A DNA stretch of 64,000 bases, from sequence record OZ196212.1; one strand, given 5' to 3'. The notes under the pieces were generated by a model. The model made no database searches. It worked only from the letters and a program-made list of their open reading frames with translations, and was not told the origin of the DNA. Shown here in pieces: positions 22,561 through 58,424 of the stretch; positions within the stretch are counted from its first letter, which is position 1; the number at the start of each line of letters is the position of its first letter. A program made the position numbers and the translations under genes.

Positions 22561-22591
22561 ATTATATATACACGCCGGGTTTTGTTAAACA
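22561..22591 (-). promoter_or_regulatory. TGTTTAAC-N17-TATAAT promoter (uvsY)
   Basis: Box at 22584-22591, -10 at 22561-22566; same box before dsbA, 61 and the ligase cluster. Confidence 0.72.
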
Positions 22592-22645
22592 CTAATCGTT
22601 CTAATATCTCTAATACCACTAAATCTACTAATTCTACTAAGATGA
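22592..22645. repeat. Six degenerate 9-bp units each starting CTAA
   Basis: CTAA at 22592, 22601, 22610, 22619, 22628, 22637 in a non-coding gap. Confidence 0.75.
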
Positions 22646-22672
22646 GACGGTTTTTTTCCGCTTCGCGCATAC

Positions 22673-22694
22673 AAAAAAAGCCCCGAAGGGCTTT
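22673..22694 (-). terminator. Terminator after gp35
   Basis: Minus strand AAAGCCC-TTCG-GGGCTTTTTTT. Confidence 0.85.
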
Positions 22695-22696
22695 AA

Positions 22697-25369
22697 TCAT
22701 TTAAGTGCTACGTCAACTGCTCGTACATTGTTTTCAAAGAAGCTTGCCACTTTGACTTCAGATGCGATTGGCATACACCATTGCGTTGTACTAGGACTCA
22801 CTGACCCTTCATCGCGACAACGAAGCATCAATATTGACGAGTCATTTTTCCACTGGAAGAACTTTCTCATCGACGAGTTGTAAACACCGACGCCTTTAGA
22901 AACCAATTTATCTGGTACATCTTCTGGGTTGACAACGCCAAAGTAGTTTCTGAATTTATCAGCAAATTCTTCGACTTGTTGTTGTGTCCAATTATGCGGT
23001 AGTATGAATGAATCATACAAAACCCAATCATCGTTGATATCATCCCACTCGCCGTTATCTAACGCGATGTAAGTTGATGTCTCAGTTCCTGTGTAGTCAA
23101 TAAGCGTATCTTGTATCCCGCTTGTGTTTCTCACACGTGCGCTGAAGTAGATATGACCGGCATCTTTACCAGATGCTTGAGCCCACATTGACACGTAATA
23201 CGGTCTAGTCGGATCGATTGTAACGTAATCAAACTCAATTAAGTCTTGAGTTCCGCTTGACACTGTGATCATCTTCGATCTGTCAGATAACGTATGACCG
23301 CCCCATTGAACATCGCCTGCTTCTTTGATTGGCATTTCATATTCGTCATACAGATTTGAGTCTGAACGATAAGCTGAAATCCAACTATCCTGATCCATCG
23401 GATCACCTGCAATAGGCGAATGTGCGAATCGAGAAGCAGCTAGACCATTCAGTGACGATTGAACTGGTGCATCAAAATTAGGTGTTTCGAATCCCGACTT
23501 ATACACTTGAATGTAATCAACGTGGTCGTCAGATTCGATATCAGTCCATATTCCGATTGTGTGCGCGCCTGCTGGAACTTGAACATAAAATTCATGCGTT
23601 TCATACATACCACCACCGAGTAATGGGCCGTTTTGTCGTCCGACTTCAGTATTCGTTGAGTTGTAAAATCGCAGATTGAACGTTGCTGCCGCGTCGTCAT
23701 TGTCTTGTTTAGCACGGAATTTGTATATCAGATATTGCCCCTCAACAACGCCATGATCGCCTAACACAAATCGAGTGTCCGTAATCTTGTTCGTTGTCTC
23801 GATGATAGGGCTACCGAATCCATTCACACCAATTGTCAATCGCGATTCAAAGTTCACATCGATTTCAGCATCGCCATCACTCGGGTGGTCGAAAATGCAT
23901 CGGTCTGAAATGAAACCAAGTTGAGCACTACCAAAACCCGTGTAGCTGTAGCTATACTTGTCAAAGTAACTCGCACCGCGCCATTCTACCGGATTAAAGC
24001 GACTCAGAGCAGCGTCAACGTCTGCATTTGAATAACATGACCCATTAGACACTAAAGCGAAATACTCGTCTGTGAGCGCGTTCATAGCGTTTATGAAGTT
24101 GCCGCGTTCAGCCGTGTTGTTCAAGCGATACGAGTTGTTGATTGCAGGTTCGCCTTCTGCGGTAAACGTAAACAAGTGCATTTTGCCTGTTTCTTTCGCT
24201 TCTGGCGCGAGTAAGTGCGATTCATTGATCACGCCTTCTGCAATTTCAGAACTGCCGTCAGCGACACCACGAGCATATAAACGAACTGTGTTCGATGCAC
24301 CCTCATTTAAGTGACGCGTTTCAAGACAGTTTTCAGCGATGCGAATGCCGACTGGTGCGTATACCCACAGCTCAGTGATGTTAACGTCAACACCGGGACC
24401 GGGTTGTCCACTGCCGTTTGCTCGTTGAGCGCCAATAACAAACCACCAACTGGTTGAACCGACTGATCCATCACCGATTGATTGTGTGCCTGTGTTGTAT
24501 TCAAGACCGCCCCATGTGCTGTATGTTGAATCTTCTCGAATTGCTTCGTAATCACGCACGCCACCAGACGTAGCATCATAATCACCTGGGTAGTTCTTGA
24601 TGATCGGTCTGTCAGTGATAATCGGGTTTGCGATGTATTGCTTGCCCGTCGGAGTTGGCGATGCACTTCCGTACGTCATGTACCAAAACATGTTTGCTGT
24701 GTTCAGCGTACTAGGCGTAGTGAAACGATAGTATCGACGAACCCATCGCTTACCATCGACTACAATATCGTTGCCTGACGATTCGAAAATTTCCCCTGCT
24801 GCTGCTGGTGATGCTATGGGAGTTCCTGACCCGTCATACCAACGAGCATGAAAAAGAGGGCAGTCGAGATCGTGATCGCTTTCATTCTCATACGCAACCC
24901 AACAAGACATTGTATACGTCGTATTCGTTCGCAAACGAGTTTGAGGCGTGTCAAATCTATATTGATCTGTAGCGCCTGTAGTGCTACGTTGTAGAATATA
25001 ATTCGAAGAACCGGGATTCGCCATTTCGACGATATCCCATGTTCCGACTATGTTGCCAACGTTCTCTGGTCGAGAGCCGTTAGCAAAGTTAGTGCCGCGC
25101 AGAAATTGACCAACGTCATGCGCAGCAAAGTTATTAGATTGACGCCAGATGTTCGTGACGTTTCTCTCAGGGTAGTGTAATTTGAACTGAAAACGTCCAT
25201 CTTCACGACGAAAGTCATCAAGCCCATTTAGCGCACTGAATTTAGCTTCAATGTCGGGATCAGTCCCGACACTACGCGATTCAGCGTCTGAAGTAAACCA
25301 GACGCCTCCAGTTGAATCATGGCGAAAAATCAGAAGATAATCGCCATCACGTTTAAGTCTTTCGTACAT
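22697..25369 (-). CDS. gp35: Long tail fibre hinge connector, extended multidomain form (890 aa)
   Basis: Directly downstream of gp34; beta-rich domains incl. a fibrinogen-like-type N-terminal module; call rests mainly on synteny. Confidence 0.72.
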   Translation of the reverse strand: MYERLKRDGDYLLIFRHDSTGGVWFTSDAESRSVGTDPDIEAKFSALNGLDDFRREDGRFQFKLHYPERNVTNIWRQSNNFAAHDVGQFLRGTNFANGSRPENVGNIVGTWDIVEMANPGSSNYILQRSTTGATDQYRFDTPQTRLRTNTTYTMSCWVAYENESDHDLDCPLFHARWYDGSGTPIASPAAAGEIFESSGNDIVVDGKRWVRRYYRFTTPSTLNTANMFWYMTYGSASPTPTGKQYIANPIITDRPIIKNYPGDYDATSGGVRDYEAIREDSTYSTWGGLEYNTGTQSIGDGSVGSTSWWFVIGAQRANGSGQPGPGVDVNITELWVYAPVGIRIAENCLETRHLNEGASNTVRLYARGVADGSSEIAEGVINESHLLAPEAKETGKMHLFTFTAEGEPAINNSYRLNNTAERGNFINAMNALTDEYFALVSNGSCYSNADVDAALSRFNPVEWRGASYFDKYSYSYTGFGSAQLGFISDRCIFDHPSDGDAEIDVNFESRLTIGVNGFGSPIIETTNKITDTRFVLGDHGVVEGQYLIYKFRAKQDNDDAAATFNLRFYNSTNTEVGRQNGPLLGGGMYETHEFYVQVPAGAHTIGIWTDIESDDHVDYIQVYKSGFETPNFDAPVQSSLNGLAASRFAHSPIAGDPMDQDSWISAYRSDSNLYDEYEMPIKEAGDVQWGGHTLSDRSKMITVSSGTQDLIEFDYVTIDPTRPYYVSMWAQASGKDAGHIYFSARVRNTSGIQDTLIDYTGTETSTYIALDNGEWDDINDDWVLYDSFILPHNWTQQQVEEFADKFRNYFGVVNPEDVPDKLVSKGVGVYNSSMRKFFQWKNDSSILMLRCRDEGSVSPSTTQWCMPIASEVKVASFFENNVRAVDVALK

Positions 25370-25377
25370 AAGTCACC

Positions 25378-28300
25378 TTAAATTGCGTGACCGAAAGTAA
25401 ATTCCATCACGCCTTGATTAGTCGTTGACATTCTTACAGAGCCAACTTGAATGTAGTCTCTGTATTTAACACTCTCACCAGTACCGCCATCAGGCGTGAA
25501 CAAGTCGATGCGTTCAGATAGAGTTTTACCTGCACCCGCTGACAACGCAGTATGTTCCGCTGAAGTTGAGCTTGGGTCCGCAGTACGAACGTCGCTTGTT
25601 ACTTGAACGATACCTTTGTTTGTGCGACTTGCTTTATTCAAGCGGTCGTTGCTCACAGTGCCAGATGTGATGTTCTCACCTGAGTGTGCGTGACTGTTGT
25701 TGTTCACTTGTACGCTTGCAGTAACATTGCTGCTACCGTCGAAGCTAACTGAACCCGTCAAATCACCGCTGAATGTAACAGTACGAGCAGTTTCCCACTT
25801 CGCAGCCGTCGCAGCCATGTTGTCAATACCCAAGTATTTCGTACGTAGTGTACCAGTACCCGGTGAACGACCATTTGCAGAACTTTCATTCTCATAAATT
25901 GATGAGCCGAAAGAACCCGCCCCGTCAACTTCAAGACCACCGTACACGTTAGTGTAGCCGTTTCGTGCTACTTTAAGCTGCCAGTTGTTTTCAACATCAG
26001 TAAAACCGATATCACCCGACTGATAGTAAATCTCACGTGTGCTGTTGTTGTCCGTTGTATCTTTGAACTCGATACGCGGGTTAGCACCCTGAATCTTGAT
26101 TTCATTGTCGGTGAACGTGTATGTCCCTGCAATGAAATCGTCAACATCAGAACGTGCATACTGCGTGCTGTTCAAGCCGTCTAGCAATTCTGAATCATCA
26201 GCTTTTGCGTTCAATGGCAAGTAGTTTTGCAATGCGTAGTGCAAGCCGTATGGGCTTACTGCATATTGATGACGATTATATGCTGTGTACGCTTGTGATG
26301 AACCGTTAGTGCTATCACCGACGAACGTTTCACTTGCAGTCGCGCTTCGAGTTGTACCGTAGCGTGATTCACTTGAGCGTGAGTTTGCCGCAGTGCGTGT
26401 CCAGTAAGTCAAGTCACTTGGTGTTAACACGATTTCATTTGACGCTGAACCGCTAGCCACTTCAGTTGAAGTTGCAAGGCGAACGATACCAGCCAAAGAT
26501 TCAGTCGCACGACGCGAGTTCAGTTTCTTCGGTGTTAGCATTACAGTATCAAGTGGGCTCGACTGGCTATCAGCTTCAGCTTGCGTTGCAACTTGCAGCG
26601 TACCGCGTTGTGTTTCAGTCGCAGATGCGATTGAGAACGTTACATCGTCCCAAATTGTACCCGTATGCGATAAGCCGTCTGTTCCTGCTGTAACGAAGTG
26701 ATCACGGTCAAGCCATGTCTTCAGTTTAAGAGGGACGATCATTCGTGTACTATCAGTACCAGTATCAACTTCAGTCTGAGTTGCGATTTCAGCAACACCG
26801 CGACGCGATTCTGTAGCAGTACGGTCGTTTAGTGTGCTTGGCGTAATGAATACGCGATCCCATGCTTCGCCTGAACCCGATGTCGCTCTAGCTTCAGCTA
26901 GTGTAGCAACGCGAGAAATACCACGAATTGTTGAACTTGCTGTCCACGCTGCGAATTTCTTAGGCGTGATGATAGCGTCATCAACTTGAGAATCGTTAAT
27001 ACGAAGCTCAGTGCTCTTAGCAACCCATAGTGTACCCGGTTGATTTTCAGTCGCACGATACTCATCAAGCATTTTCGCTGTTACGAAACGAAGATGATCA
27101 GTTTTATCGTAAACTGTGTTGTCAGTGCCATTTAGTGTACGGTCTGAACGCATGTTTGCAGTCGATTCGACTGTACCATCAGCATTGATGTTATCAGACG
27201 CTTTTACAAGTTTACCAACACCCGTTAGATCTTCTTCAGCTTGAGCAGCGTGAAATTTACGTGGCGTGATTACTTGCGTGTCGTTTGTAGTGCTGCGAGT
27301 TTCATTCTGCGTAGCAATCTCAACAACACCGCGACGATTTTCAAGAGCTGTACGCGCATTGAATGAGCGAGGCGTAATGAAAATATCATGACGGAACGCT
27401 GAATCAGCATAACGACTTGTTTCGTTGCCGTTCGTGATAACACGCGACATTTCAAGTGCTTCATCAGTTGTCAATAGAGCTACACGAGCGATACCGACTT
27501 GATCTTCTGCTGCACGACGTGCGTCTAGCGTTTCAACTGTGATCACGTGATCTTTCAGTGGGTTTTGATTCGCCCATGAACTACCAGTATCTTCAGCGTG
27601 CGCGTAGTCGATGCCATGTGCAAGTGCTTCAGTCGGTGATGCTAGTTTAGCAAGACCCGGACGCTTACGGTGATTCTCATCAACGATATCGATACGAGAC
27701 GAGATATCAGCAAAATCCCACACTTTGCGAGTTGCATCGTAGAACAATATGAATGAGTAACCGCGATCTTCGTCATTGATAGTAAAGCTATCGTTGAACG
27801 TATCTACAGTCGCTGCGAATTCACTGTACTTAACCATTCTGTATTCGTCAAGCGAACGAACGATTTTGTATTCGTTTGCACCATGACCGACATCATCATC
27901 ACCGAACTGAGGGTGAACTTGAACAGTTACTTCTTTACCCGGTGTTTTAACGTTTGACAACTCAATCCAGTCACCATCAACTGGCGATTGCGGAAGCGTT
28001 ATTGTCATCGCTGCAACTGCACTATTAATGTTGATGTCGTAACGACGATTCACGATCAATTGCTCAGTGCTTGATGCGCCTAGATGCTGCCACGGTTGAG
28101 CTTCGTGGGAGATCACGATTACCCATGTGTTGTTATCACCGCCAACGTACATCAGTTCAGCATGACCGATATTGTCTAGCGTGATTGTTTCAGCTCCTAC
28201 ACCGCTAATTGGGTGAATGATTTGCTGATCATCAAGCGTCGGGTGAATGCCGATTTGAATTCGAGTTTGTGTGATGTTCGTTGAAACGTCGCGCAGACGC

Positions 28301-29049: not shown

Positions 29050-29089
29050 TTCATTGCTCCTTTGTTTAGATATGCAATTCTTTATAGTA

Positions 29090-29097
29090 TATTTAGA
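29090..29097 (-). promoter_or_regulatory. Late-promoter variant TCTAAATA (gp34)
   Basis: 40 nt upstream of the gp34 ATG. Confidence 0.7.
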
Positions 29098-29127
29098 CTC
29101 ACGATATACACATAGGAATAGACACAC

Positions 29128-30060
29128 ATGAGTTTAGAAGGGTTTTTTAAACGAAAGACTAAAACATTTGACGGTGAGCCTGAGGGCGTCAACTTAGTTG
29201 ACTTCAGTCAAATTGTCTTGAGTTCAATCATGGCTACATATAAGCCGACTGATTTACTGACGACTGACTTAATTCGTCACATCGTTCTTAACACGCTGCG
29301 CAGCAACGTACTAAAGAACAAAATCAAATATCCGCGCATTATTCTTTGTATAGATAATGGTCATGGCGGCTACTGGCGCAAGAAGAAGGCTTGGTATTAC
29401 AAGTTCAAACGTAGTTCGCAGCGTGACGAGTCGGGTTGGGATTTCGATATGATCTTTAATTCGATGGCTCTCATCAAAGAAGAGATTCGTCAGAACATGC
29501 CTTACTATGTTCTTGACATCGAGGGCGTTGAAGCCGATGACCATATCGGTGTTTTGACGAAATACTACGTGAACAAAAACGTTCCAGTATTGATTACGTC
29601 TTCAGATGGTGACTTTACGCAATTGCACACGAGCAAGCTTGTTCGTCAGTGGTCACCGATTCAGAAGAAGTGGGTAAAACCGAAGCATGGTTCGCCAGAA
29701 ATGGACATCATGTACAAGTGCATCAAGGGCGATAAGAAAGATGGCATCGCGCCTATGAAAGTGCCGAACGATCACTATACACACGGTGATGGTCGTCGCG
29801 CTCCACCGATTCGTGCAGAAGAGCTTCGAACGTTGATGACTTCTACTAAAGAAGAGCTGAAAACGTTACTTACCGATGAGCAATGGGTACGTTATGAAGA
29901 GAACAGAGAAATGCTTGATTTCGAGTTTATCCCGCAAGATATACATGATAGCATCATTTCTCAATTCGAAGAACAACGCCCTGCGCCGCGCAGTAAGTTG
30001 ATGATGTATTTTGCATCGAAAAAACTAGATAAACTCTTGGAAAATATGAGCGAATTCTAG
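29128..30060 (+). CDS. rnh: RNase H / 5'-3' flap exonuclease
   Basis: DFSQI, YWRKKKAWYYKFKR, EADDHIG, SSDGDFTQLH, KGDKKDGI motifs of T4 RNase H. Confidence 0.95.
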   Translation: MSLEGFFKRKTKTFDGEPEGVNLVDFSQIVLSSIMATYKPTDLLTTDLIRHIVLNTLRSNVLKNKIKYPRIILCIDNGHGGYWRKKKAWYYKFKRSSQRDESGWDFDMIFNSMALIKEEIRQNMPYYVLDIEGVEADDHIGVLTKYYVNKNVPVLITSSDGDFTQLHTSKLVRQWSPIQKKWVKPKHGSPEMDIMYKCIKGDKKDGIAPMKVPNDHYTHGDGRRAPPIRAEELRTLMTSTKEELKTLLTDEQWVRYEENREMLDFEFIPQDIHDSIISQFEEQRPAPRSKLMMYFASKKLDKLLENMSEF

Positions 30061-30070
30061 TTCAAAAACT

Positions 30071-30100
30071 TGTTTAACACGCTTCATGCTGCTGTATAAT
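30071..30100 (+). promoter_or_regulatory. TGTTTAAC-N16-TATAAT promoter (dsbA-33-59-32)
   Basis: Box 30071-30078, TATAAT 30095-30100. Confidence 0.75.
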
Positions 30101-30146
30101 TAGCAGCATGAACACAAACACTGACTAAAACATAATTGAGGCATCA

Positions 30147-30419
30147 ATGGAAAACATCGAATACGAAACAATCTCTACTCCGCAAGACAAGCAAGAAGTT
30201 ATCAACATGATCAAAGAAGCTGCTGCGTCGCTTTTACGCGCAGACTCTGAAGCTGATCTTCGTAAAGATATTGCAGCACGTGCGAAAGAAGAGTTCCAAA
30301 TTCCTGCTGCTGAGTTTAACAAACTGACGCGTTGGTATCATAAACAAAACCGTGCTGAAGAGCAAGCGAAGCACGAGAAAGTTGACACACTATACGAGAA
30401 GCTATTTGACGATGAATAA
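30147..30419 (+). CDS. dsbA: dsDNA-binding protein DsbA
   Basis: MIKEAA...RKDI..RAKEE....FNKL...YHKQ; between rnh and 33. Confidence 0.88.
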   Translation: MENIEYETISTPQDKQEVINMIKEAAASLLRADSEADLRKDIAARAKEEFQIPAAEFNKLTRWYHKQNRAEEQAKHEKVDTLYEKLFDDE

Positions 30420-30705: not shown

Positions 30706-31297
30706 CATATTTCGAGTCTATTGCGCGGTAAAAGCGCATATGGGTGGGAAGTACGATATTTCCAAGTACAAACTCGGTATGAAAACACCGCAGTCTGCGT
30801 TTGAAAAGCGTTCAGACAAGGTGTTTTTCGAGCGACTAGCCAAGCGGCTAACACTGAATGATTGCTATCAGTTACTGGTGAGTAACTTGGCAGCTAATCC
30901 AAACGCGATTTCATATGAGATTGCGGGTGCTGACGCGCATGAATTCTGGTTGAAACATACCGGATTTATGGAAATTTACAGTCAGCATTACAAAAATGAG
31001 CTACTTACGATTTTTACTCTTATAAATAAAGAGCAAAAGAAATTCAAAGACTTGTTTAGAGGTGAGGGGCATCCAGTTATAATGCAACTCGTGTTACGAA
31101 ATACAATCTCAATCGAGACGTTCGTAATTCTGAATAGACTTTTGAATTTTGTCCCTGTAATCGACAAAGATTACGGTGACGACATTTTTTGGCACGAGTT
31201 TAAGACGAGAGCTTTAGCATACGATAAGTTGCTGAAAATCGACGAAAAACTTGCAAAAGAAATGTTTATTCAAGTAAAAAATCAAAGTAAAATATAA
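30647..31297 (+). CDS. gp59: Helicase loader
   Basis: VY..VKAHMGGKYDISKY, FEKRSDKVFFERL, ISIETFVIL motifs; precedes 32. Confidence 0.9.
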   Translation: MKRLLEVDLVLPRTWVNGFSIFRVYCAVKAHMGGKYDISKYKLGMKTPQSAFEKRSDKVFFERLAKRLTLNDCYQLLVSNLAANPNAISYEIAGADAHEFWLKHTGFMEIYSQHYKNELLTIFTLINKEQKKFKDLFRGEGHPVIMQLVLRNTISIETFVILNRLLNFVPVIDKDYGDDIFWHEFKTRALAYDKLLKIDEKLAKEMFIQVKNQSKI

Positions 31298-31350
31298 AAC
31301 ACACTATACGATACTATATCAAACAATAAAATACAATAAGGTAATACAAC

Positions 31351-32259
31351 ATGACTATGTTTAAGCGCAAATCACCAGCAAAACTTCAAGAAAAACTTGA
31401 GCAAATGAGCACCAAAAAGTCTTACGACAACGCTGACGAGTGGAAACTTTCTACTGATAAGCTTGGTAACGGCTCTGCTGTGATTCGCTTCCTTCCTGCT
31501 AAAGGCGAAGACGACCTACCATTCGTAAAAATCTTCACTCACGGTTTCAAAGAAAACGGCAACTGGTTCATCGAAGCTTGTCCAAGCACTATCGATCTTC
31601 CATGTCCATGCTGTGCAGCTAACGGCGAGCTTTGGAAAACTGAGAACGAAGACAATCAAAACATTGCACGTAAGCGCAAGCGTACTCTTTCTTACTGGGC
31701 AAACGTATACATCATCAAAGATGAAGCGAACCCAGAAAACGAAGGCAAGACATTCAAATACCGCTTCGGTAAGAAAATTCTTGACAAGATCACTCAAGCA
31801 GCTCAAGCAGACGACGACCTAGGTGTACCTGGTATGGACGTAACTTGTGTGTTTGACGGTGCTAACTTCTCTCTAAAAGCGAAGAAAGTATCTGGTTTCC
31901 CTAACTACGACGACTCTAAATTTGGTCCAAGCACTGAGCTTTGCGGCGGTGACGAAACTAAACTTGGCGAAATCTGGGAAGCGATGCACGATCTAAACGC
32001 TATCATCGCTCCATCAGCGTTCAAATCTGAAGCTGATTTGCAAAAACGCTTCTTACAAGTGACTGGTGCTCAGACTCCAAAAGCGTCTGCTGCTCAAAAT
32101 CTTGAAGCGCAAATCAACACTTCAGCGCCTGCTCAAGCTAACGCTCAAAAGCCGGCAACTCAATCTGCTCCAGCGAAAGTTGAAGTTGACGAGCCGCTGA
32201 AAGACTCAAGCGACGACGAACTAGACGCATTACTTGCGGATCTAGAACTAGACGGCTAG
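31351..32259 (+). CDS. gp32: Single-stranded DNA-binding protein
   Basis: GNGSAVIRFLP, HGFKENGNWFIEACP..CPCC zinc site, YWANVYIIKD, FKYRFGKKI, YDDSKF, acidic tail. Confidence 0.97.
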   Translation: MTMFKRKSPAKLQEKLEQMSTKKSYDNADEWKLSTDKLGNGSAVIRFLPAKGEDDLPFVKIFTHGFKENGNWFIEACPSTIDLPCPCCAANGELWKTENEDNQNIARKRKRTLSYWANVYIIKDEANPENEGKTFKYRFGKKILDKITQAAQADDDLGVPGMDVTCVFDGANFSLKAKKVSGFPNYDDSKFGPSTELCGGDETKLGEIWEAMHDLNAIIAPSAFKSEADLQKRFLQVTGAQTPKASAAQNLEAQINTSAPAQANAQKPATQSAPAKVEVDEPLKDSSDDELDALLADLELDG

Positions 32260-32269
32260 AACGAATGAG

Positions 32270-38522: not shown

Positions 38523-38542
38523 CGTTTTTATTGAAAAAGTGG

Positions 38543-38571
38543 TTGCACTGAAAATCAAATGAGCCTAATAT
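38543..38571 (+). promoter_or_regulatory. Early promoter TTGCAC-17-TAATAT
   Basis: Preceded by an A-tract; leader carries an 18-nt sequence repeated at 49182. Confidence 0.75.
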
Positions 38572-39860: not shown

Positions 39861-40324
39861 AGTATCAAGCCATAAACGAGTTTGACTTTGCAAACGGCGA
39901 GGGTGTTCGATTGAGCATCTTCGTTTCTGGTTGTATTCATCGCTGTGCGGGCTGCTACAACGAATCGACGTGGGATGTGAACGATGGTATCGAATTCACT
40001 GACGAAACGTTTAGAAGCGTTCTGAGCGCATTAGAGCATCACGACGGTCTGAGTCTATCGGGCGGTGATCCGCTTCATGAAGACAATCGCAAAGTGATAC
40101 TTGATATCTGCCGAGCTGCAAAAGAGCTGTATCCCGACAAAGACATTTGGCTATGGAGCGGCTACAAATATAATTCTGTTTATCATCTTGAAATTATGAA
40201 TTATATTGATGTCTTCATAGACGGGAAATATAAACGTCATCAGCCGACTACGAAAGCGTGGCGCGGTTCTGATAATCAAATCATGTACGTTCGCGTAGAT
40301 GATAAACTAATCAATAAGGGATAA
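39857..40324 (+). CDS. nrdG: Anaerobic RNR activating enzyme (radical SAM)
   Basis: NGEGVRLSIFVSGCIHRCAGCYN, LSGGDPL, WLWSGY, DVFIDGKY, WRGSDNQ. Confidence 0.96.
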   Translation: MKYQAINEFDFANGEGVRLSIFVSGCIHRCAGCYNESTWDVNDGIEFTDETFRSVLSALEHHDGLSLSGGDPLHEDNRKVILDICRAAKELYPDKDIWLWSGYKYNSVYHLEIMNYIDVFIDGKYKRHQPTTKAWRGSDNQIMYVRVDDKLINKG

Positions 40325-40325
40325 T

Positions 40326-40850
40326 ATGAGTTGCGTTTGGATTACAAGTGACCTGCATATTGGTCACAAAAACATCGGGAAGTTTCGCGACGGTATCGAA
40401 GATACTCAAGCAAACACCGATTGGATTGTTGACTTCTGGCTGAAGAACGTGCGCAAGCGCGATACAGTAATCATGTTGGGTGATACTGCGTTCACCGAAG
40501 AAGCAATCGGCATTTTAGCGGGCTTACCGGGTCGCAAAGTGCAATACGGTGGGAATCACGATGATTTGCCAGTCACAAGCTACATGCGTGCGTTTGACGT
40601 AATTCGTGGCTGTGAGAAGTTCAAGAAACTTGGTTGGCTAAGTCATTTCCCACTTCACCCCGACGAGCTGCGCGGTCATTTCAGCATTCACGGTCACGTG
40701 CATTATGCAACGATTGATGATTATCGTTACGTCAACGTGTGCTGCGACAACTTACAGCGCAATATTGGTCAGCCGATGATTCGCTTGACTGATCTTCGTC
40801 AATTGCTCGACAAACGTCGTGAATCAAAAGAGGTCTCTTACGACTTCTAA
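40326..40850 (+). CDS. Calcineurin-like metallophosphoesterase
   Basis: SDLHIGH, LGD, GNHD, SHFP, IHGHVH motifs. Confidence 0.88.
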   Translation: MSCVWITSDLHIGHKNIGKFRDGIEDTQANTDWIVDFWLKNVRKRDTVIMLGDTAFTEEAIGILAGLPGRKVQYGGNHDDLPVTSYMRAFDVIRGCEKFKKLGWLSHFPLHPDELRGHFSIHGHVHYATIDDYRYVNVCCDNLQRNIGQPMIRLTDLRQLLDKRRESKEVSYDF

Positions 40851-43076: not shown

Positions 43077-43098
43077 AGGGGCGTTTTCGCCCCTTTTT
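43077..43098 (+). terminator. Rho-independent terminator
   Basis: AGGGGCG-TTTT-CGCCCCT-TTTT. Confidence 0.85.
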
Positions 43099-43100
43099 AA

Positions 43101-43131
43101 TGTTTAACGTTCGTGAAACTCGTGTGATAAT
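43101..43131 (+). promoter_or_regulatory. TGTTTAAC-N17-GATAAT promoter (primase)
   Basis: Box 43101-43108, TG-extended GATAAT at 43126-43131. Confidence 0.7.
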
Positions 43132-43150
43132 GCTCACAAGAGGATATATT

Positions 43151-45800: not shown

Positions 45801-45806
45801 AAACGG

Positions 45807-45835
45807 TTGCGTTGTTTGTTTCACTCGATTATATT
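45807..45835 (+). promoter_or_regulatory. Early promoter TTGCGT-17-TATATT
   Basis: Leader ends AAAGAGAACATTATG. Confidence 0.72.
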
Positions 45836-48690: not shown

Positions 48691-48712
48691 GCGTAAACAT
48701 GAGAAACACATT

Positions 48713-49120: not shown

Positions 49121-49138
49121 AAACGAAAATAATTGAAA

Positions 49139-49175
49139 AAAAGGGTTGCTTCGGCAGCCCTTTTCGCGTTATATT
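49139..49175 (+). promoter_or_regulatory. Terminator hairpin fused with an early promoter (TTGCTT-18-TATATT)
   Basis: AAAAGGGTTGC-TTCG-GCAGCCCTTTT contains the -35 hexamer. Confidence 0.7.
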
Positions 49176-49218
49176 AGCTCTATCGCAACGACGCGACCAA
49201 AAACAAAGAGAGAACATT

Positions 49219-49545: not shown

Positions 49546-49547
49546 TC

Positions 49548-49940: not shown

Positions 49941-49943
49941 ATT

Positions 49944-52390: not shown

Positions 52391-52514
52391 TGTGTTCTTA
52401 CTGATAAGTGCATTTTTACTGTTTCTAGATAAGATGTATATTATGTCGCTACTGTGTTGTATAGTAGCGGCATTGTTATTGATAATCTATGTGAAAATTA
52501 GTGAGGTAAATTAA
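52338..52514 (+). CDS. Small membrane protein (start uncertain)
   Basis: Hydrophobic ORF filling the gap between the sirtuin and topoisomerase genes. Confidence 0.45.
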   Translation: MVYLIVLSVTVVGISTTSVFLLISAFLLFLDKMYIMSLLCCIVAALLLIIYVKISEVN

Positions 52515-54346
52515 TGGATTTGACTAAATTCGGCGCATCGGAAGAACCTGAAGCAAAAGACAACTTTCAGATTGTAACTGATAAAGAACACGTACTCATG
52601 CGACCGGGCATGTATGTGGGTTCGGTTGATAAAGAAGCGCACAGTCGATTCGTGTCTGGTGAATATCGCTCGATTGAATACGTACCGGGGTTGGTGAAAA
52701 TCATCAACGAAGTAATCGATAACTGTATCGATGAAGCGATTCGTACCGAGTTCAAGTTCGCGAATCTCGTTGAAGTTAAAATCGATGGCAATCGCGTAAT
52801 CGTTGCTGATAACGGTCGCGGTATTCCGCAACATGAAGTCACAGACCCGCATGGCAAAAAGCTGCTTCAACCAGAAGCTGCATGGACCCGCACAAAAGCA
52901 GGTAGTAACTTCTCAGATGATCGTACGACTGTGGGTATGAATGGCGTTGGTGCTGCACTGACAAACTTCTTCAGTCATTCGTTCAAAGGCGTTACATGTG
53001 ACGGTAAGAACACAGTACACGTGACTTGCTCAAACAACGCTGACCGAATCTTTGTTCGCAAAGTGAAAGGCGGCAAGCAAGGTACTTCTGTTGAGTTCAT
53101 CCCCGACTTCAATCGTTTCGGTGTGTTCGGCATTTCGCCAGAAGACGTATCAATCATCAAAGACCGTATTGAATCGCTGTCAGTAGCTTATCCCGAGATC
53201 ACGTTCAAGTTTAACGGCAAGAAACTGAGTCCGACACTGAAACAATATGCAAAGCAGTTCAATACTGAAGTTGCGTTCGAGTTTGAAGATGTCGCGTGCT
53301 TCATTGCGAAGTCACCGGCTGAAGAGTTCAAGCAGAACAGTTTCGTGAATGGTGTTCAGACAGTAAATGGCGGTACACACGTTGATTACTTTATGAACAA
53401 GCTTGCAGACGAAATCATTCCGATGGTTAAGCGCAAGCACAAAGTCGCTGTTCCAAAGCCGCAACTGAAGAACGGCTTGACGTGTGGCTTGTTCATTCGT
53501 GGGTTTGTTGACCCGAAGTTCGATAGTCAGACTAAAGAGCGTCTAACGTCAGCACAGAGCGCAGTGTCACCGTACTTGAAAGATCTTGACTACGATAAGA
53601 TTGCCAAGAAAGTGTTAGCTGATGACGATATCGTATTGCCGATTATCGAAGCACTGATCGCGAAGCAGAACGCAGCGGAAGCGCGTGAGTTAGCAAAGCA
53701 GCAAAAGAAAGCAGCTAATGCGAAAGTAGCTGATCACATCAAAGCATCCCAACCCGGTGGAACGTTGTTCTTGACGGAAGGTAAGTCAGCGATTGGTTAT
53801 CTACTGAAAGTACGCGATAGCAAGCTTCACGGTGGTATGCCGTTGCGCGGTAAGGTACTGAGCACGTGGGGCAAGAAGCCCGCAGCAATAATGGCTAACA
53901 AAGAGCTACGCGATATCATGAATGTGTTGAACATTCGTCTAGGCGATGATAACATACGTGATATGTACTACAAAGATATCGGTATTCTAGTTGATGCTGA
54001 TGTCGATGGTAAAGGCAGTATCTTCCCGTTGCTACTTGCATTCTTCTATCAATGGCCCGAGCTGTATAAGCAGCGTCGAATCAAATTCGTTCGTACGCCA
54101 GTGGTAATTGCTGCAAAAGGCAAAGAAGTTAAGTGGTTCTACACGATTGACGACTATCGTCGTGCTAAATTGACGAAAACATGGAAGATTCGATACATCA
54201 AAGGGCTTGGTTCACTCACTGAGAAAGAATACAAGCGCGTAATCAATGAACCAGTGTATGACGAAATCGTAATCGATGACCCTAGTTGCTTCGAATTGCT
54301 GTTCGGTGATGACACTGATAAACGTAAGGAATGGATGACTGGATGA
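52514..54346 (+). CDS. 39+60: DNA topoisomerase II large (GyrB-like) subunit, gp39 and gp60 fused
   Basis: HVLMRPGMYVG, EVIDNCIDE, DNGRGIP, GMNGVGA GHKL motifs; LTEGKSA, PLRGK, DADVDG TOPRIM; RYIKGLGS. Confidence 0.96.
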   Translation: MDLTKFGASEEPEAKDNFQIVTDKEHVLMRPGMYVGSVDKEAHSRFVSGEYRSIEYVPGLVKIINEVIDNCIDEAIRTEFKFANLVEVKIDGNRVIVADNGRGIPQHEVTDPHGKKLLQPEAAWTRTKAGSNFSDDRTTVGMNGVGAALTNFFSHSFKGVTCDGKNTVHVTCSNNADRIFVRKVKGGKQGTSVEFIPDFNRFGVFGISPEDVSIIKDRIESLSVAYPEITFKFNGKKLSPTLKQYAKQFNTEVAFEFEDVACFIAKSPAEEFKQNSFVNGVQTVNGGTHVDYFMNKLADEIIPMVKRKHKVAVPKPQLKNGLTCGLFIRGFVDPKFDSQTKERLTSAQSAVSPYLKDLDYDKIAKKVLADDDIVLPIIEALIAKQNAAEARELAKQQKKAANAKVADHIKASQPGGTLFLTEGKSAIGYLLKVRDSKLHGGMPLRGKVLSTWGKKPAAIMANKELRDIMNVLNIRLGDDNIRDMYYKDIGILVDADVDGKGSIFPLLLAFFYQWPELYKQRRIKFVRTPVVIAAKGKEVKWFYTIDDYRRAKLTKTWKIRYIKGLGSLTEKEYKRVINEPVYDEIVIDDPSCFELLFGDDTDKRKEWMTG

Positions 54347-54573
54347 TTTCAGCAAAAGAAGCAAAAGCTAGATTGAAGACTGAACCTCAAGCTGTCACGG
54401 CAGCTTTAGAGGAGCTTGATTTAGCTGTTCAAATCGCGTCAGCAACGAAGACACGCGTTGACTATCGTACTGACAAACTAACTGAATCAGAGCGCGGGAT
54501 TCTTCGTAACAAGCTTATCAGCTTAGGTTACGATGCGTTCATCGCTGGTGAAAAGCTAGAGGTAATGTGGTAA
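54343..54573 (+). CDS. Hypothetical protein (76 aa)
   Basis: ATGA overlap with the topoisomerase stop; ends LGY...LEV.W like two downstream ORFs. Confidence 0.7.
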   Translation: MISAKEAKARLKTEPQAVTAALEELDLAVQIASATKTRVDYRTDKLTESERGILRNKLISLGYDAFIAGEKLEVMW

Positions 54574-54782
54574 TGAGAGAAGTCTTAGATAGCTATACCA
54601 AGGTGTGTGCTGATTATCGCACCGACCTGAACGAAATTTCTGTATCACAATCCGATTACTATATCGTGCAACTGTATGCGATTCTAGTTACACTCGGGTT
54701 CGCAGTCGAGACAATCATTTTCTGGTTGTTCGTTGCAATCGTGTATGCACCAATCGCGCTAATTGGCGGGTGGGTTAAATAA
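54573..54782 (+). CDS. Hypothetical membrane protein
   Basis: TAATG overlap; C-terminal hydrophobic stretch. Confidence 0.62.
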   Translation: MREVLDSYTKVCADYRTDLNEISVSQSDYYIVQLYAILVTLGFAVETIIFWLFVAIVYAPIALIGGWVK

Positions 54783-54791
54783 GAGACGGAG

Positions 54792-55070
54792 GTGGCAATT
54801 ATGCTCAAGTCTTTTATAGAACACGATAGATTCACAGAAATGACGTACCAAGAGTTGCGTGATCTCACGATCAATGAGATTCACGCGCTCGTTCGCAAGC
54901 TGAAGAAACAGCTTCCGAAGAAGTACAAAGATATTATCGACGAAATCGAAGTCGATATGTATGAAGATCTTATCGCGGAAATCGCTTATAACGGTGGTTT
55001 GCGAGGTAAGAAATTCACAAACATGGCAATTCCTAAGAAAATCTTAGACAGGTATGCCGATTATTACTAA
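54792..55070 (+). CDS. Hypothetical protein (92 aa)
   Basis: SD GGAGG region; coupled ORF. Confidence 0.68.
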   Translation: MAIMLKSFIEHDRFTEMTYQELRDLTINEIHALVRKLKKQLPKKYKDIIDEIEVDMYEDLIAEIAYNGGLRGKKFTNMAIPKKILDRYADYY

Positions 55071-55084
55071 GTGAGAACCATATT

Positions 55085-55489
55085 ATGTATGATGCTGCAT
55101 CAATGAGAGCACGTTTTCAACCAAAAGAAGACAAGACGATAACCGAAGCACGTGAACTGTTGCAAAGCCACTTGTACGATACGATGCAATTGGTCGAATC
55201 AGTAAGTCATGACTCGCTTGAACTCAAATACGCGCTCCCTGCGTTTCTGTACGAGGCGTATTCGGAAGAGTTGCGCAATCTTGGTTACAACGTGTATGTG
55301 ATCAAAGATACGATTGTGACCAATCCGCACCCAATTGATTTTCGAGCACCTGCTTTCCCTCGTCCGGGTTTCATCGACGTGCGATGCGTAGACGAAAAAG
55401 AAGCGATGACTCACGTTAACACGATCATGAAGCTACATGGTATCAAACATACAATTGCTTTAGAAATCAACTGGAGACGCAAATCATGA
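55085..55489 (+). CDS. Hypothetical protein (134 aa)
   Basis: SD GAGA; LRNLGY...LEINW end. Confidence 0.7.
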   Translation: MYDAASMRARFQPKEDKTITEARELLQSHLYDTMQLVESVSHDSLELKYALPAFLYEAYSEELRNLGYNVYVIKDTIVTNPHPIDFRAPAFPRPGFIDVRCVDEKEAMTHVNTIMKLHGIKHTIALEINWRRKS

Positions 55490-55746
55490 TTGATGCAACA
55501 AAAGCACGCGTAGATGCAATCCGCGCAATAGAGAAACAGATTGATGCTGAAGATCTTGATTGGCTCGACGATGAAATTCGAGCAGCATCGAAAGCCGGAC
55601 GCTTTTTCATAAACGTTCACCTAGCTGATCAGCTACCAAACACTACAGGCAATCGTCACTTGCGAACGCTGCTTGAGTATTTGAAACTGAAAGGCTACAA
55701 CGCGTATTTCGTCGGTACTAACTTGGAGATTAAATGGCAGATTTAA
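55486..55746 (+). CDS. Hypothetical protein (86 aa)
   Basis: ATGA overlap; LKLKGY...LEIKW end. Confidence 0.7.
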   Translation: MIDATKARVDAIRAIEKQIDAEDLDWLDDEIRAASKAGRFFINVHLADQLPNTTGNRHLRTLLEYLKLKGYNAYFVGTNLEIKWQI

Positions 55747-56462
55747 AGGTTTACTATTGTAGCGACGTTCACAATGACTATCACACTGAGAACGCGCTAG
55801 AACGCATCACGGGCGACAAAACGGCTGTACTGGTAGTAGCGGGCGACATTAACAGCAAAGGGCGCACAGTGCGCGATTTAGAAGCTGTAGCCGACCGTTG
55901 GCGTGCAGTCATCGCAGTACCTGGCAATCACGACTGGTGGGGTTTAGCTCTTCATGAGCGACATAAATTCGATTCAGAGGTTGACAATGTACACGTATTG
56001 CTTGAAAATACAGTTCAGATAGACGACGTTACATTCTGTGGCACTACACTATGGCACGCTATTCCAGATTGGTTTGCGGGTCAGAAGTGGAAAGACACTA
56101 TGAACGACCGCAAGAAGATTCGTGGACGCTTGTATAAGCGACTTTACGGTGAAGAAATTCACTCAACGCATCTTGATTGTGTCAAGTTCATAACAGATTG
56201 TACGAAAATATCAGGTAAGAAAGTGCTGATCACGCATCACGCGATGTCGCCTCAGTCAATTTCAACCGAGTATGCGGGTTCGTCTACTAATATTTTTTAC
56301 TACACGCCATTAGAGCATTTGTTGAAGCATTTCAACTACCACATTCATGGTCATATACATCAAGAAAAAGATTACATGGTTGGTTTGTGTAACGTTGTAT
56401 GTAATCCGCGAGCCTATGGTACTGAAAATGATGAATACGGAATAAGGATTCTGGACATATGA
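55734..56462 (+). CDS. Calcineurin-like metallophosphoesterase
   Basis: SDVH, AGDI, PGNHD, ITHH, IHGHIH motifs. Confidence 0.9.
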   Translation: MADLKVYYCSDVHNDYHTENALERITGDKTAVLVVAGDINSKGRTVRDLEAVADRWRAVIAVPGNHDWWGLALHERHKFDSEVDNVHVLLENTVQIDDVTFCGTTLWHAIPDWFAGQKWKDTMNDRKKIRGRLYKRLYGEEIHSTHLDCVKFITDCTKISGKKVLITHHAMSPQSISTEYAGSSTNIFYYTPLEHLLKHFNYHIHGHIHQEKDYMVGLCNVVCNPRAYGTENDEYGIRILDI

Positions 56463-56668
56463 TGATTTTACTTTACATTCTATTGGGCTTTCTACTAACT
56501 GCACTCGTTGGCGACACTGTGCGCAGTCGTTACGTACTACAAGCAGAATCGATGGGCAAGACGCCACTACCGATGAATTTCTTCATTATTACGTGTGTTT
56601 TGATTCTGCCAATCTGTCTATTGCTGCTTGGCATCAAGAAAGTGCTACAATTCTTCAAATTTATGTAG
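56459..56668 (+). CDS. Membrane protein (69 aa)
   Basis: Two hydrophobic segments; ATGA overlap. Confidence 0.62.
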   Translation: MMILLYILLGFLLTALVGDTVRSRYVLQAESMGKTPLPMNFFIITCVLILPICLLLLGIKKVLQFFKFM

Positions 56669-56676
56669 TTTAAATA
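56669..56676 (+). promoter_or_regulatory. Possible late-promoter variant TTTAAATA
   Basis: One mismatch to TATAAATA, 34 nt before ORF 56711. Confidence 0.45.
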
Positions 56677-56710
56677 CGTGCGTCTAATAATAAAACTTAA
56701 AAGGTAAAAT

Positions 56711-56956
56711 ATGACGCACGATTTTAATATGCTCCTTGAGCAGTACAACCTAGCAAACTTTGAATGCGATGGTGACTTCGAGGACTATTACTGGTCAGTA
56801 GCCGAATGGATCGGTCAAACGATTTTCAGTCACGGTACGCTTCGAAAAACTGACTTTCTTGAACTATTGTGTGATTTGCTTGAAATCACTGAAGATGAAA
56901 TCAACGTCGATGAAGTCGATGATTTCTTGAACGAAGTATATGAACTAAACGAATAG
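56711..56956 (+). CDS. Highly acidic hypothetical protein (81 aa)
   Basis: SD AAGG; 22 D/E against 2 K/R. Confidence 0.75.
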   Translation: MTHDFNMLLEQYNLANFECDGDFEDYYWSVAEWIGQTIFSHGTLRKTDFLELLCDLLEITEDEINVDEVDDFLNEVYELNE

Positions 56957-57023
56957 GTGACATATGAAAAAGTATCATCGTAAGGAGCTATTTCACTGAG
57001 TAATTTAACTTGGAGAAATAGCA

Positions 57024-57536
57024 ATGACAGAACCAAAACTGTACAAAGGCGTGAAGCGCAAAGACCTACCGAAATACGACCGCGAGACAATGGGCTACAA
57101 GTACATTTTCAAGCTTGACGAGGGACCAAACTATCCTGAGTGGGCGCGTGTCTACGTTCAGTACAATAACTGGTGGAATCCCTGCACAACTGGCGTGGGT
57201 TACTATCTAGTCGATGGTGCAAGTAAGCGTTTCAACTTGATTCGCAACGCTGAGTACCTAGCGCGACATAAAGGTGCATACGTGTACCGTTACACTCCGC
57301 TACCAAACGGTGGTGGTTGGAAAAACTCGATTCATTCAGTGCGTGCAAAAGGCGCAATGGCTGAACACAAGCATGACGAAATGTGCAAAGCTGAACTTGA
57401 GGCTGAATACGGTCGCATTGTTCGACACAAACGCGCATACGTTACCAAAATGAATGCAACTGATTGGGATCATCCCCACGGTTACAATTCACAACGTGGC
57501 TGGAAGCGTTCTAAAAAGCGCAAACAGTGGATGTAA
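57024..57536 (+). CDS. Basic hypothetical protein (170 aa)
   Basis: SD GGAG; C-terminal DW...RGWKRSKKRKQW. Confidence 0.75.
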   Translation: MTEPKLYKGVKRKDLPKYDRETMGYKYIFKLDEGPNYPEWARVYVQYNNWWNPCTTGVGYYLVDGASKRFNLIRNAEYLARHKGAYVYRYTPLPNGGGWKNSIHSVRAKGAMAEHKHDEMCKAELEAEYGRIVRHKRAYVTKMNATDWDHPHGYNSQRGWKRSKKRKQWM

Positions 57537-57537
57537 T

Positions 57538-57573
57538 AAAAGGGTTGCATTGTGCAGCCCTTTTTAGTATCAT
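57538..57573 (+). promoter_or_regulatory. Terminator hairpin fused with an early promoter (TTGCAT-17-TATCAT)
   Basis: AAAAGGGTTGCA-TTG-TGCAGCCCTTTTT contains the -35 hexamer. Confidence 0.68.
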
Positions 57574-57597
57574 GAGCATTCAATTCAAGGAGTGCTT

Positions 57598-57810
57598 ATG
57601 TCTATTTTATTAACTGCGCTTGGCGCAACTCTGGGTGTTATCGTGATTGTGTTATCTGCATACCCGTTATGTCGAACACTCGACAACATTTTTGAAGATC
57701 GTTTTAGTAGTGATGCAGCGGCAATGACATGCTTTGTGCTTGCACTTTCTATTTTCATCTTCGCCTTTATGCTAGTCGTTTTGGCTGGTGCAGAATACTT
57801 TCCATTGTGA
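57598..57810 (+). CDS. Membrane protein (70 aa)
   Basis: SD GGAG; two hydrophobic helices. Confidence 0.65.
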   Translation: MSILLTALGATLGVIVIVLSAYPLCRTLDNIFEDRFSSDAAAMTCFVLALSIFIFAFMLVVLAGAEYFPL

Positions 57811-57818
57811 GGAATACT

Positions 57819-58400
57819 ATGAAAAAGACAATTATTTTTGATGTAGATGGCGTACTAATCGATTGGGCAAGCCAACTACCGTTATTCTGCAAGCGATGCG
57901 GTATCGACCCCGTGCTTGCACTGAAACACTTCACAGCTAAAGAGCACGTTGACGTTCGCGACCTATTCGGCATCGAGCAGAAATACATCGCGTTCGAGCT
58001 ACTAGACAAATACAATCTAGAGCACGGTAAGTACATGACTGCTTTCCCAGATGCTGTAGACCACATTCACAAGCTTGCGAAAGAGTACAACTTGATTGCA
58101 CTGACGAAGTTCGGTGATACAACTGAGCACTGGTTAACTCGCAAGTTCAATCTTGAGACGTTCTTCCCTGGGTTGTTCAGTGAGCTGATCACAATTCGCG
58201 GTGACGAATCGAAGATTGGTTACGTTGCTGCAATTCAAGCAGAACATGACGTGGTAGCATTCGTCGATGACCAACTTGAGAACATCGAAGCAATCAAACG
58301 AGCAAATGGTGTGCTGACCGTCCACATGAATCGATATGATGAACGTGCAGACGTTAAACACATGAGCGATATGATGTCTTTCATTGAAAACAATGTTTAA
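57819..58400 (+). CDS. 30.2: HAD-superfamily hydrolase, T4 gp30.2-like
   Basis: MKKTIIFDVDGVLIDWASQLP.F as T4 30.2; ALTKFG, FVDDQLEN; upstream of ligase. Confidence 0.82.
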   Translation: MKKTIIFDVDGVLIDWASQLPLFCKRCGIDPVLALKHFTAKEHVDVRDLFGIEQKYIAFELLDKYNLEHGKYMTAFPDAVDHIHKLAKEYNLIALTKFGDTTEHWLTRKFNLETFFPGLFSELITIRGDESKIGYVAAIQAEHDVVAFVDDQLENIEAIKRANGVLTVHMNRYDERADVKHMSDMMSFIENNV

Positions 58401-58424
58401 CACATAGCGATTCGATTATATAAT
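58394..58424 (+). promoter_or_regulatory. TGTTTAAC-N17-TATAAT promoter (ligase cluster)
   Basis: Box 58394-58401, TATAAT 58419-58424. Confidence 0.68.

Follow-up and report, generated by a model that had tools for sequence, protein, structure and literature searches.

The first 64,000 bases of the genome of Vibrio phage D527 (OZ196212.1, 254,106 bp), a KVP40-like phage of the T4 type, contain a promoter element that stands before uvsY, dsbA, the primase gene 61 and a ligase cluster. Here, we found that this element belongs to a class in which (T)GTTTA at -37 to -32 and a -10 hexamer form the functional unit, and that GTTTA is the most abundant sigma70-geometry promoter class of the D527 genome. 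Judged by sequence, the nearest known relative of the class is the early promoter of T4, which has the same register. We consider it probable that the GTTTA sites are T4-early-type promoters of the host sigma70 and that they form the main prereplicative promoter class of the genus.

The 64,000 bases are referred to below as the window; the complete D527 genome was taken in as well, to set the motif against the whole range of promoters of the phage. The provenance of D527 lies in Vibrio crassostreae and oyster collections, and its DNA is about 77-81% identical to that of KVP40, V07, VS2, F86, VH7D and nt-1. The deposited annotation and Pfam together confirm uvsY, dsbA, gp33, ligase, Alc (PF17527) and an Alt-like ADP-ribosyltransferase among the genes of the window.

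Four composite promoters and their conservation

The first-pass annotation of the window had singled out the 8-mer TGTTTAAC, placed 16 or 17 nt before KATAAT, at uvsY, dsbA, the primase gene and the ligase cluster. Exactly four sites of the form TGTTTAAC-N15-18-KATAAT occur in the window, at just these genes, with 0.01 expected, and none of the 100 shuffles of the window from which the expectation was taken reached four. The uvsY promoter lies on the minus strand (22561..22591), with TGTTTAAC at 22584-22591, a spacer of 17, TATAAT at 22561-22566 and the uvsY ATG at 22542. The other three lie on the plus strand: the promoter of dsbA-33-59 (30071..30100) combines the box with a spacer of 16 and TATAAT at 30095-30100, ahead of the dsbA ATG at 30147; the primase promoter (43101..43131) has a spacer of 17, GATAAT and a TG at -15/-14; and the promoter of orf58459 and the ligase cluster (58394..58424) has a spacer of 17 and TATAAT, followed by orf58459 and then by the ligase gene at 58893. 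All four occupy short non-coding gaps just upstream of these genes, a hairpin adjoins each of them, and the box at 58394 shares bases with the stop codon of the gene before it. Taken by itself, the 8-mer shows no enrichment in the window (8 copies, 3.8 expected), and its remaining four copies are located within coding sequence and have no -10 hexamer.

For the comparison with relatives, the N-termini of the downstream genes served as anchors, and the upstream 110 nt were aligned from KVP40, V07, VS2, F86 and VH7D. The orthologous loci were drawn from syntenic blocks of the phage collection; in a search of IMG/VR for such loci, UvsY matched only KVP40 and VH7D, and DsbA matched none. The GTTTA core and the -10 hexamer persist at uvsY, dsbA, gene 32, gene 61 and orf58459, where the spacers between them have diverged. 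This divergence is complete at orf58459, where the relatives read (A/T)GTTTAA(C/T) and TATAAT. KVP40, V07, VS2 and VH7D retain both GTTTA and the -10 at uvsY, with TGTTTACA as the box in the first three; the gene 32 promoter is conserved in VS2, KVP40, V07 and F86; and the primase boxes of the relatives read TGTTTATC or TGTTTATT. Because core and -10 are retained while the sequence between them is not, the four sites are confirmed, at the level of sequence, as genuine conserved promoters.

Relatives differ from D527 in the outer letters of the 8-mer (AC at -31/-30, T at -37) and carry for example TGTTTACA, TGTTTAGA, AGTTTAAT or TGTTTATC. The exact 8-mer was therefore rejected as the functional unit: TGTTTAAC is too long, and the unit is (T)GTTTA at -37 to -32 plus the -10 hexamer. 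The uvsY site of F86 reads AGTTGATC-N17-TATAAT, that is GTTGAT with a G at -33. It is the sole T-to-G switch at -33 among the orthologous sites compared.

The GTTTA class across the genome

In the whole genome, GTTTA is followed by a -10 hexamer at 34 sites with a spacer of 17 (counted after the 8-mer), compared to about 2 sites at each other spacing from 8 to 30. The peak that the scan gave in D527 appeared again, at the same spacer of 17, in the syntenic blocks of four relatives, F86, VS2, V07 and KVP40. In an unbiased tally of every TT located 17 nt upstream of a -10-like hexamer in D527, the combination G, T, A at -36, -33 and -32, i.e. GTTTA, was by far the most enriched, with 47 sites observed and 6 expected; G, G, C at the same positions, the type of the PeSL cassettes discussed below, reached 21 sites against 5.7 expected. 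The class has about 35-47 members in D527. It had been introduced as a third promoter class, and as a rare class it does not stand.

Could the four identical 8-mers be a coincidence among weak promoters or chance matches? The missing enrichment of the 8-mer on its own and the variation at -31/-30 and -37 in relatives would fit such an explanation. It is refuted by the composite count, by the concentration of the genomic sites at a single spacing and by the conservation in five diverged phages, and we give it practically no weight.

Thirty-one sites with N17, in addition to a few with N16, closely precede a gene or fall within the tRNA region, the near-gene filter being a greedy open reading frame (ORF) map made in the analysis. 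Information content in these 31 sites is restricted to TGTTTA and the -10. The dinucleotide at -31/-30 is AC in 9 sites, CA in 5, GA in 4, AT in 4 and TT in 3, with others in the remainder; the fraction of A at -46 to -38 is 0.43 (0.29 genome-wide), and a TGn extended -10 is present in 5/31. The TATAAT-like -10 with its invariant A-11 and T-7 is partly forced by the search pattern, but it is independently supported since the -10 is conserved in the relatives.

The sites precede replication and recombination genes (uvsY, rnh, dsbA-33-59, 32, 61 and 43), genes of nucleotide and cofactor metabolism (tk, gene 1, GTP cyclohydrolase, QueC and NAMPT), PhoH, the asiA operon, a cluster leading to gp55, the tRNA region with six sites, and about 14 hypothetical genes. 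The proposal that the element marks genes which T4 expresses in middle mode thus holds in that the class occupies positions of T4 middle promoters, and is too narrow in that it also drives the asiA operon, the tRNAs and many ORFans. The T4 promoters that depend on MotA include PuvsY, PdsbA, P32, P61, P43, P1, PtRNA and P30 (Hinton's table).

Within the window, the first-pass annotation was right about its four sites, and drew both the unit and the membership too narrowly, missing four further plus-strand members. The rnh promoter (29063..29093, box 29063-29070) reads TGTTTAGA-N17-TATATT ahead of the rnh ATG at 29128; it is identical in F86, V07 and VS2, in a region that also encodes the N-terminus of a tail fibre on the opposite strand. 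The gene 32 promoter (31263..31293, box 31263-31270) reads TGTTTATT-N17-TAAAAT, with the ATG of gene 32 at 31351. A candidate within gene 59 (31053..31083, box 31053-31060) reads TGTTTAGA-N17-TATAAT and lies 273 nt upstream of gene 32. The weakest member is a candidate inside nrdG (40177..40207, box 40177-40184), which reads TGTTTATC-N17-TATATT and lies 124 nt upstream of a phosphoesterase gene at 40326.

Outside the window, two sites are intragenic as well, one at genome positions 113123-113153 inside rIIA, 323 nt before rIIB, and one at 221419-221449 on the minus strand inside gene 1, before a 57A-like gene. These match the internal middle promoters PrIIB and P57A of T4, and the gene 59-internal site upstream of gene 32 may be compared to T4 P32. 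Together, the three intragenic sites suggest that promoter placement is conserved although the promoter type differs from that of T4.

A second flavour: PeSL-type promoters

What had been described in the first-pass annotation as the early class of this phage is the PeSL cassette of nt-1 and KVP40, TTGYVH-N17-TAWWAT in a stem-loop (Comeau, Arbiol and Krisch 2014, PMC4122927), present in D527 as AAAAGGGTTGCTTCGGCAGCCCTTTTTGCGTATTATAGCTCTATCGAAACGAAAC and looser relatives. The descriptions given of the other promoter classes were accurate, both for GG-TTGCNN/TTGACN-17-TAATAT/TATTAT and for the late promoter TATAAATA, and the GTTTA class indeed differs from both. Position -37 is T in 24/31 GTTTA sites and G in 15/18 PeSL-type sites; position -33 is T in the former and G in the latter; the -10 is TATAAT-like as opposed to TATTAT/TAATAT; and the leader, ATCGAAAC in the PeSL type, has no conserved counterpart in the GTTTA class, with ATCG(A/C)(A/G) found in 3/31 and 9/18 sites, respectively. 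At the four TGTTTAAC sites we found neither the PeSL -35 TTGYVH nor its -10 TAWWAT, but TTTAAC with TATAAT or GATAAT, and neither a G/C-rich stem-loop on the -35 nor a conserved leader; hairpins flank three of these sites and leave the box outside.

The two flavours also differ in the genes that they precede. Named genes lie downstream of 22/36 GTTTA sites but of only 3/17 PeSL-type sites (Fisher p = 0.004, from a hand classification of the deposited annotation; p = 0.016 if the tRNA region is counted once). This supports the conclusion that the GTTTA class precedes conserved replication, recombination and nucleotide-metabolism genes, while PeSL promoters precede ORFans. Two hybrid promoters, at genome positions 139486-139516 and 184706-184736, read GGTTTACA-N17-TAATAT and are followed by a PeSL-type leader ..CATCGAAACG. 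Since such hybrids exist and the uvsY promoter of F86 reads GTTGAT, one holoenzyme may read both flavours; the sequences suggest a single reader for the GTTTA and the PeSL promoters.

The T4 early register and a possible role of Alt

The -35 region of T4 early promoters is GTTTAC at -36 to -31, with a conserved G-36 (Nolan 2006). The identical script, run on 58.5 kb of T4 as a control, returned 13 sites at spacer 17 over a background of 1-2, and all 13 are of the form xGTTTAC(A/T) and precede early genes, including motB, srd, modB and asiA. The architecture in D527 would thus be that of a T4-type early promoter with the positions -31/-30 relaxed: (T)GTTTA at -37 to -32 follows a tract rich in A and is separated by a rigid gap of 17 bp (rarely 16 or 18) from a TATAAT-like hexamer.

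We propose that the host sigma70 holoenzyme, probably ADP-ribosylated by an injected Alt-like enzyme, reads GTTTA as a -35 variant via sigma region 4, and that transcription would start about 7 nt after the -10 with no need for new phage proteins. Set just after terminators, the GTTTA promoters would restart transcription before uvsY, rnh, dsbA-33-59, 32, 61 and 43, and likewise before tk, gene 1, the tRNAs and the ligase and gp55 clusters. They would thereby fill, in a MotA-less lineage, the role of the MotA-dependent middle promoters of T4. The other flavour, GGTTGC/GGTTGA...TATTAT/TAATAT with its ATCGAAAC leader, would belong to mobile PeSL cassettes that travel with ORFans, and for this reason the dichotomy in sequence may reflect ancestry more than the form of the polymerase.

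A stronger role of Alt is conceivable. The T at -33 of T4 early promoters was proposed to be the preferred contact of the Alt-modified alpha subunit or RNA polymerase, and G-33 is favoured in phages whose alt has diverged or is missing (Nolan 2006). The host sigma70 could read both flavours, with T-33 preferred by Alt-ADP-ribosylated alpha, so that the GTTTA promoters would be boosted from the first seconds of infection relative to the host and PeSL promoters. The A-rich tracts upstream of the GTTTA box are consistent with this, as is the Alt-like ADP-ribosyltransferase gene at 61180-62874, which has a late-type promoter-like sequence upstream. Its match to the family is weak (PF03496, 8e-6), however; by mutational analysis the effect of Alt, which is only about 2-fold, could be assigned to no single promoter position (Hinton review). 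In addition, about 20 G-33 promoters are retained in the same genome. We regard such tuning by Alt as quite improbable.

A middle class without MotA?

The first-pass annotation had interpreted its four sites as a new middle programme. The sites are indeed real promoters, unlike the PeSL and late types, and stand at T4-middle positions; their architecture is that of T4 early promoters, and a MotA box is absent. The T4 MotA box, (a/t)(a/t)(a/t)TGCTTtA, is centred at -30. The geometry TGCTT to -10 gave 2, 1 and 0 sites at spacers 13, 14 and 15 in D527, with no peak, whereas the T4 control peaked with 11 sites at spacer 14; a small TGCTT bump at spacer 17 in D527 stems from the PeSL -35 TTGCTT. 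Canonical MotA-box promoters, or the 'PmSL' idea (Comeau 2014), were accordingly rejected for want of enrichment at the MotA spacing. We also found no MotA homologue in the six frames of the D527 genome by tblastn and phmmer with T4 MotA (best E about 0.8-1). An AsiA orthologue, by contrast to MotA, is present at genome positions 194172-194465 (PF09010, E = 4.8e-36). AsiA is an early product in T4 (Hinton review), and in D527 and F86 the promoter of the asiA operon, located behind a terminator, is a member of the GTTTA class (TGTTTAGA-N17-TAAAAT/TATAAT).

In a true middle, or delayed-early, class, AsiA would remodel region 4 of sigma70 once early proteins have been produced, and an unrecognised MotA analogue or another phage activator would bind TGTTTA at -37 to -32 and recruit the remodelled polymerase, with the PeSL promoters shut off simultaneously. 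The AsiA of KVP40 co-activates with T4 MotA, and the reviews, which report no recognisable motA in KVP40, still allow a functional analogue; no partner of AsiA is known in the genus. The placement of the GTTTA sites at T4 middle-promoter positions, before replication genes rather than ORFans, would be expected of a middle class, as would two flavours that persist stably and follow gene class. Conservation moreover reaches -37/-36, beyond the canonical hexamer, at sites with a poor match to the sigma70 -35. Against this, the box agrees with that of T4 early promoters in sequence and register, where G-36 is conserved without any activator; the class is the commonest of the genome, with members at the asiA operon, at tRNAs and at numerous ORFans; both a MotA homologue and the MotA-box geometry are absent; the centre of the box lies 6-7 bp upstream of the MotA binding position; and the GTTGAT switch in F86 and the hybrid promoters favour a single reader. 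Altogether, we consider an activator-dependent middle class unlikely.

A protein of 243 aa without a known fold, encoded at genome positions 193439-194170 immediately upstream of asiA, is conserved beside asiA in all KVP40-like phages, and its location would suit an activator. Its AlphaFold2 (AF2) model (predicted local distance difference test, pLDDT, 79) is beta-rich and includes a long helix and a disordered, acidic tail. The protein has no match in Pfam and falls into a PHROG family of unknown function; the model has no match in the PDB (best E = 0.09) and no likeness to MotA or to a DNA-binding fold, which speaks against the activator. In a viral structure library it matched its own orthologue and, weakly, one uncharacterised entry, and nothing else; relatives were found in 5 clusters among 1.84 billion representatives. 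As a MotA analogue, the protein is a candidate by position, which these searches neither support nor exclude. Directly downstream of asiA, a gene at 194473-194766 encodes a Tad2-like protein (Thoeris anti-defence 2, PF11195, E = 2e-25).

Even further, one could imagine a second, independently evolved system of sigma appropriation, in which the genus-conserved AsiA would remodel region 4 of sigma70, while an activator unlike MotA in sequence and fold, for which the 243-aa protein would be the positional candidate, binds TGTTTA at -37 to -32 and redirects transcription from the PeSL-driven ORFans to the replication genes. We consider this very unlikely.

Several points weigh against host-sigma70 promoters of the T4 early type, the reading that we prefer. 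The sequence TTTAAC matches the sigma70 -35 consensus at 3/6 positions, without the key G-33, and TGn is found in 5/31 sites only; because of this poor match and the rarity of the extended -10, help from a factor or a modified RNA polymerase is plausible. The C at -31 of the T4 early consensus (GTTTAC/TTTACW) is not a property of the D527 class. Across about four independent lineages, an orthologous site hardly ever changes between T and G at -33, and the -33 flavour co-varies with -37, the -10 flavour and gene class, as would be expected of two functional classes, too. The genus keeps a working AsiA, which should block ordinary reading of the -35, and for the promoter of the asiA operon no alignment was obtained with KVP40 or nt-1. 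Finally, we found no transcriptome or transcription start data for KVP40-type phages in the literature searched, and so we infer the timing and the factor dependence of the GTTTA class purely from its sequence and setting.

Hairpins, repeats and gene starts at the promoters

The hairpins next to the promoters resemble intrinsic terminators in several cases. On the minus strand, a hairpin with a run of seven T (22673..22694; -12 kcal/mol, z = -2.5) follows the gene of the tail-fibre hinge; the uvsY promoter lies about 80 nt downstream of this hairpin. On the plus strand, the terminator-like hairpin AGGGGCG-TTTT-CGCCCCT with its T-run (43077..43099; -14.6 kcal/mol, z = -4.3) directly abuts the box of the primase promoter, and relatives keep a hairpin at this place. 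Also on the plus strand, a hairpin with arms at 58425-58431 and 58436-58442 and a T7 run (58425..58447; -9.1 kcal/mol) is conserved in all relatives and begins one base past the -10 of the orf58459 promoter. Transcripts that start from the 58394 promoter, with 5' ends predicted within or just past the left arm, would lack most or all of that arm and for this reason should be spared, so that the hairpin should terminate read-through from upstream and not the transcripts of its own promoter.

At dsbA, the -10 lies exactly in the loop of a perfect 11-bp palindrome (30084-30094/30101-30111; -17.9 kcal/mol, z = -6.2). In relatives, the palindrome shows compensatory A:T to G:C changes in both arms (CATGCTGCTG/CAGCAGCATG compared to CGTGCTGCTG/CAGCAGCACG). 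The palindrome may serve a dimeric regulator as operator, may form a cruciform, or may fold into a hairpin at the 3' end of rnh transcripts.

Between the terminator and the uvsY box (22592-22640, minus strand) lie about six non-coding repeats of 8-9 bp, (A/T)TTAG(T/A)(A/G)N, TTAGTAGAATTAGTAGATTTAGTGGTATTAGAGATATTAGAACGATTAG, an array that is conserved in all six phages compared. The uvsY promoter region of T4 is the replication origin oriF, and for this reason the array could be related to an origin; it could also be an array of binding sites for a factor.

Two deposited gene annotations at these promoters are probably erroneous. The deposited primase start, ATG 43100, falls within the T-run of the terminator and overlaps the promoter box. 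KVP40, V07 and F86 are annotated with a shorter gp61 of 352 aa, whose start is equivalent to ATG 43151, and this ATG is preceded by GAGG (43140-43143), 7 nt upstream; by these signals, ATG 43151 is probably the real start. Likewise, a deposited ORF of 53 aa (22539-22700) runs across both the uvsY promoter and the terminator, and neither F86 nor V07 has a counterpart of it.

The PeSL-type promoters of the window were mapped as well. A full PeSL on the plus strand (49135..49190) has its -35 TTGCTT in the hairpin GGGTTGCTTCGGCAGCCC, followed by a T-run, the -10 and the leader AGCTCTATCG. A related promoter (38541..38571, plus strand), GGTTGCAC-N17-TAATAT with the leader TCATCGCAACGAC, lies upstream of orf38617, and a PeSL-type promoter (62965..62995, plus strand), GGTTGCGT-N17-TAATAT with the leader CTCTACATCGAAACGAAAC, lies upstream of alc. 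More cassettes of the nt-1/KVP40 type, PeSL or PeSL-related, are found at 57535-57590, 60226-60275 and 45805-45835. In one of these loci, the hairpin at 60234 is followed by a late promoter, ATATAAATAC, in place of a sigma70 -10; in relatives, the late promoter is conserved and the hairpin sequence is not.

Implications

Phages of the KVP40 type are widely isolated as candidates for the biocontrol of Vibrio, and we know of no published prereplicative promoter map for them. The present analysis supplies such a map, with about 40 T4-early-like GTTTA promoters and about 20 PeSL promoters, and suggests corrections for two gene starts. It also sharpens a puzzle, namely that a functional AsiA is retained without MotA, and the genome offers two natural sets of -35 elements, one at core genes and one at ORFans. 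If both sets behave alike, AsiA would be a mere shut-off factor; if they behave differently, a new activator would be implied.

Comparison with known promoter systems

How does the GTTTA class relate to the promoters described in other phages of the T4 type? With the middle promoters of T4 it shares a sigma70 -10 that is paired with a non-canonical box further upstream, in which TGTTTA superficially resembles TGCTTtA, as well as downstream genes (uvsY, dsbA, 32, 61, 43, 1 and the tRNAs) and the presence of an AsiA orthologue. It differs in that the box ends 19 nt from the -10, i.e. at the -35 position, while the MotA box lies 12 +/- 1 bp from it, which bears out the earlier remark that the box sits nearer to -35 than that of MotA, and in that D527 is without motA and without a TGCTT peak at the MotA spacing.

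PeSL promoters share with the GTTTA class the sigma70 geometry with N17, the arrangement in terminator-plus-promoter modules, the same genomes and the two GGTTTACA hybrids. They are distinguished by TTGYVH in a G/C-rich hairpin, G-37, TAWWAT, the ATCGAAAC leader and their linkage to ORFans as a repeated element of about 70 bp, whereas conservation at GTTTA sites covers only the box and the -10.

In T4 relatives of the RB49 type, neither motA nor a middle consensus was found (reviews), and the D527 genus resembles them as T4-type phages that lack both. RB49 early promoters have a near-perfect TTGACA with G at -33 (Nolan 2006; PMC4122927), and the D527 genus differs in carrying the T-33 flavour at its core genes and in retaining asiA. 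With the early promoters of T4, the GTTTA class shares G-36, TTTA at -35 to -32, a TATAAT-like -10 and an equal distance between box and -10, and it may also share an upstream tract rich in A. Indeed, the early asiA promoter of T4, AGTTTACA-N17-TATTAT, and that of the asiA operon of D527, TGTTTAGA-N17-TAAAAT, are of one form. The C-31 of T4 is found in only about 5/31 D527 sites, mostly in the tRNA region, compared to A-31 in about 15/31, and with the rarity of TGn the auxiliary elements are weaker than those of the T4 'uber' promoters. The difference in use is that the D527 class precedes genes that T4 drives from middle promoters. In RB49, according to what is reported of the work of Desplats et al. 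in 2002, such T4-middle genes are said to be served by early-type and late promoters.

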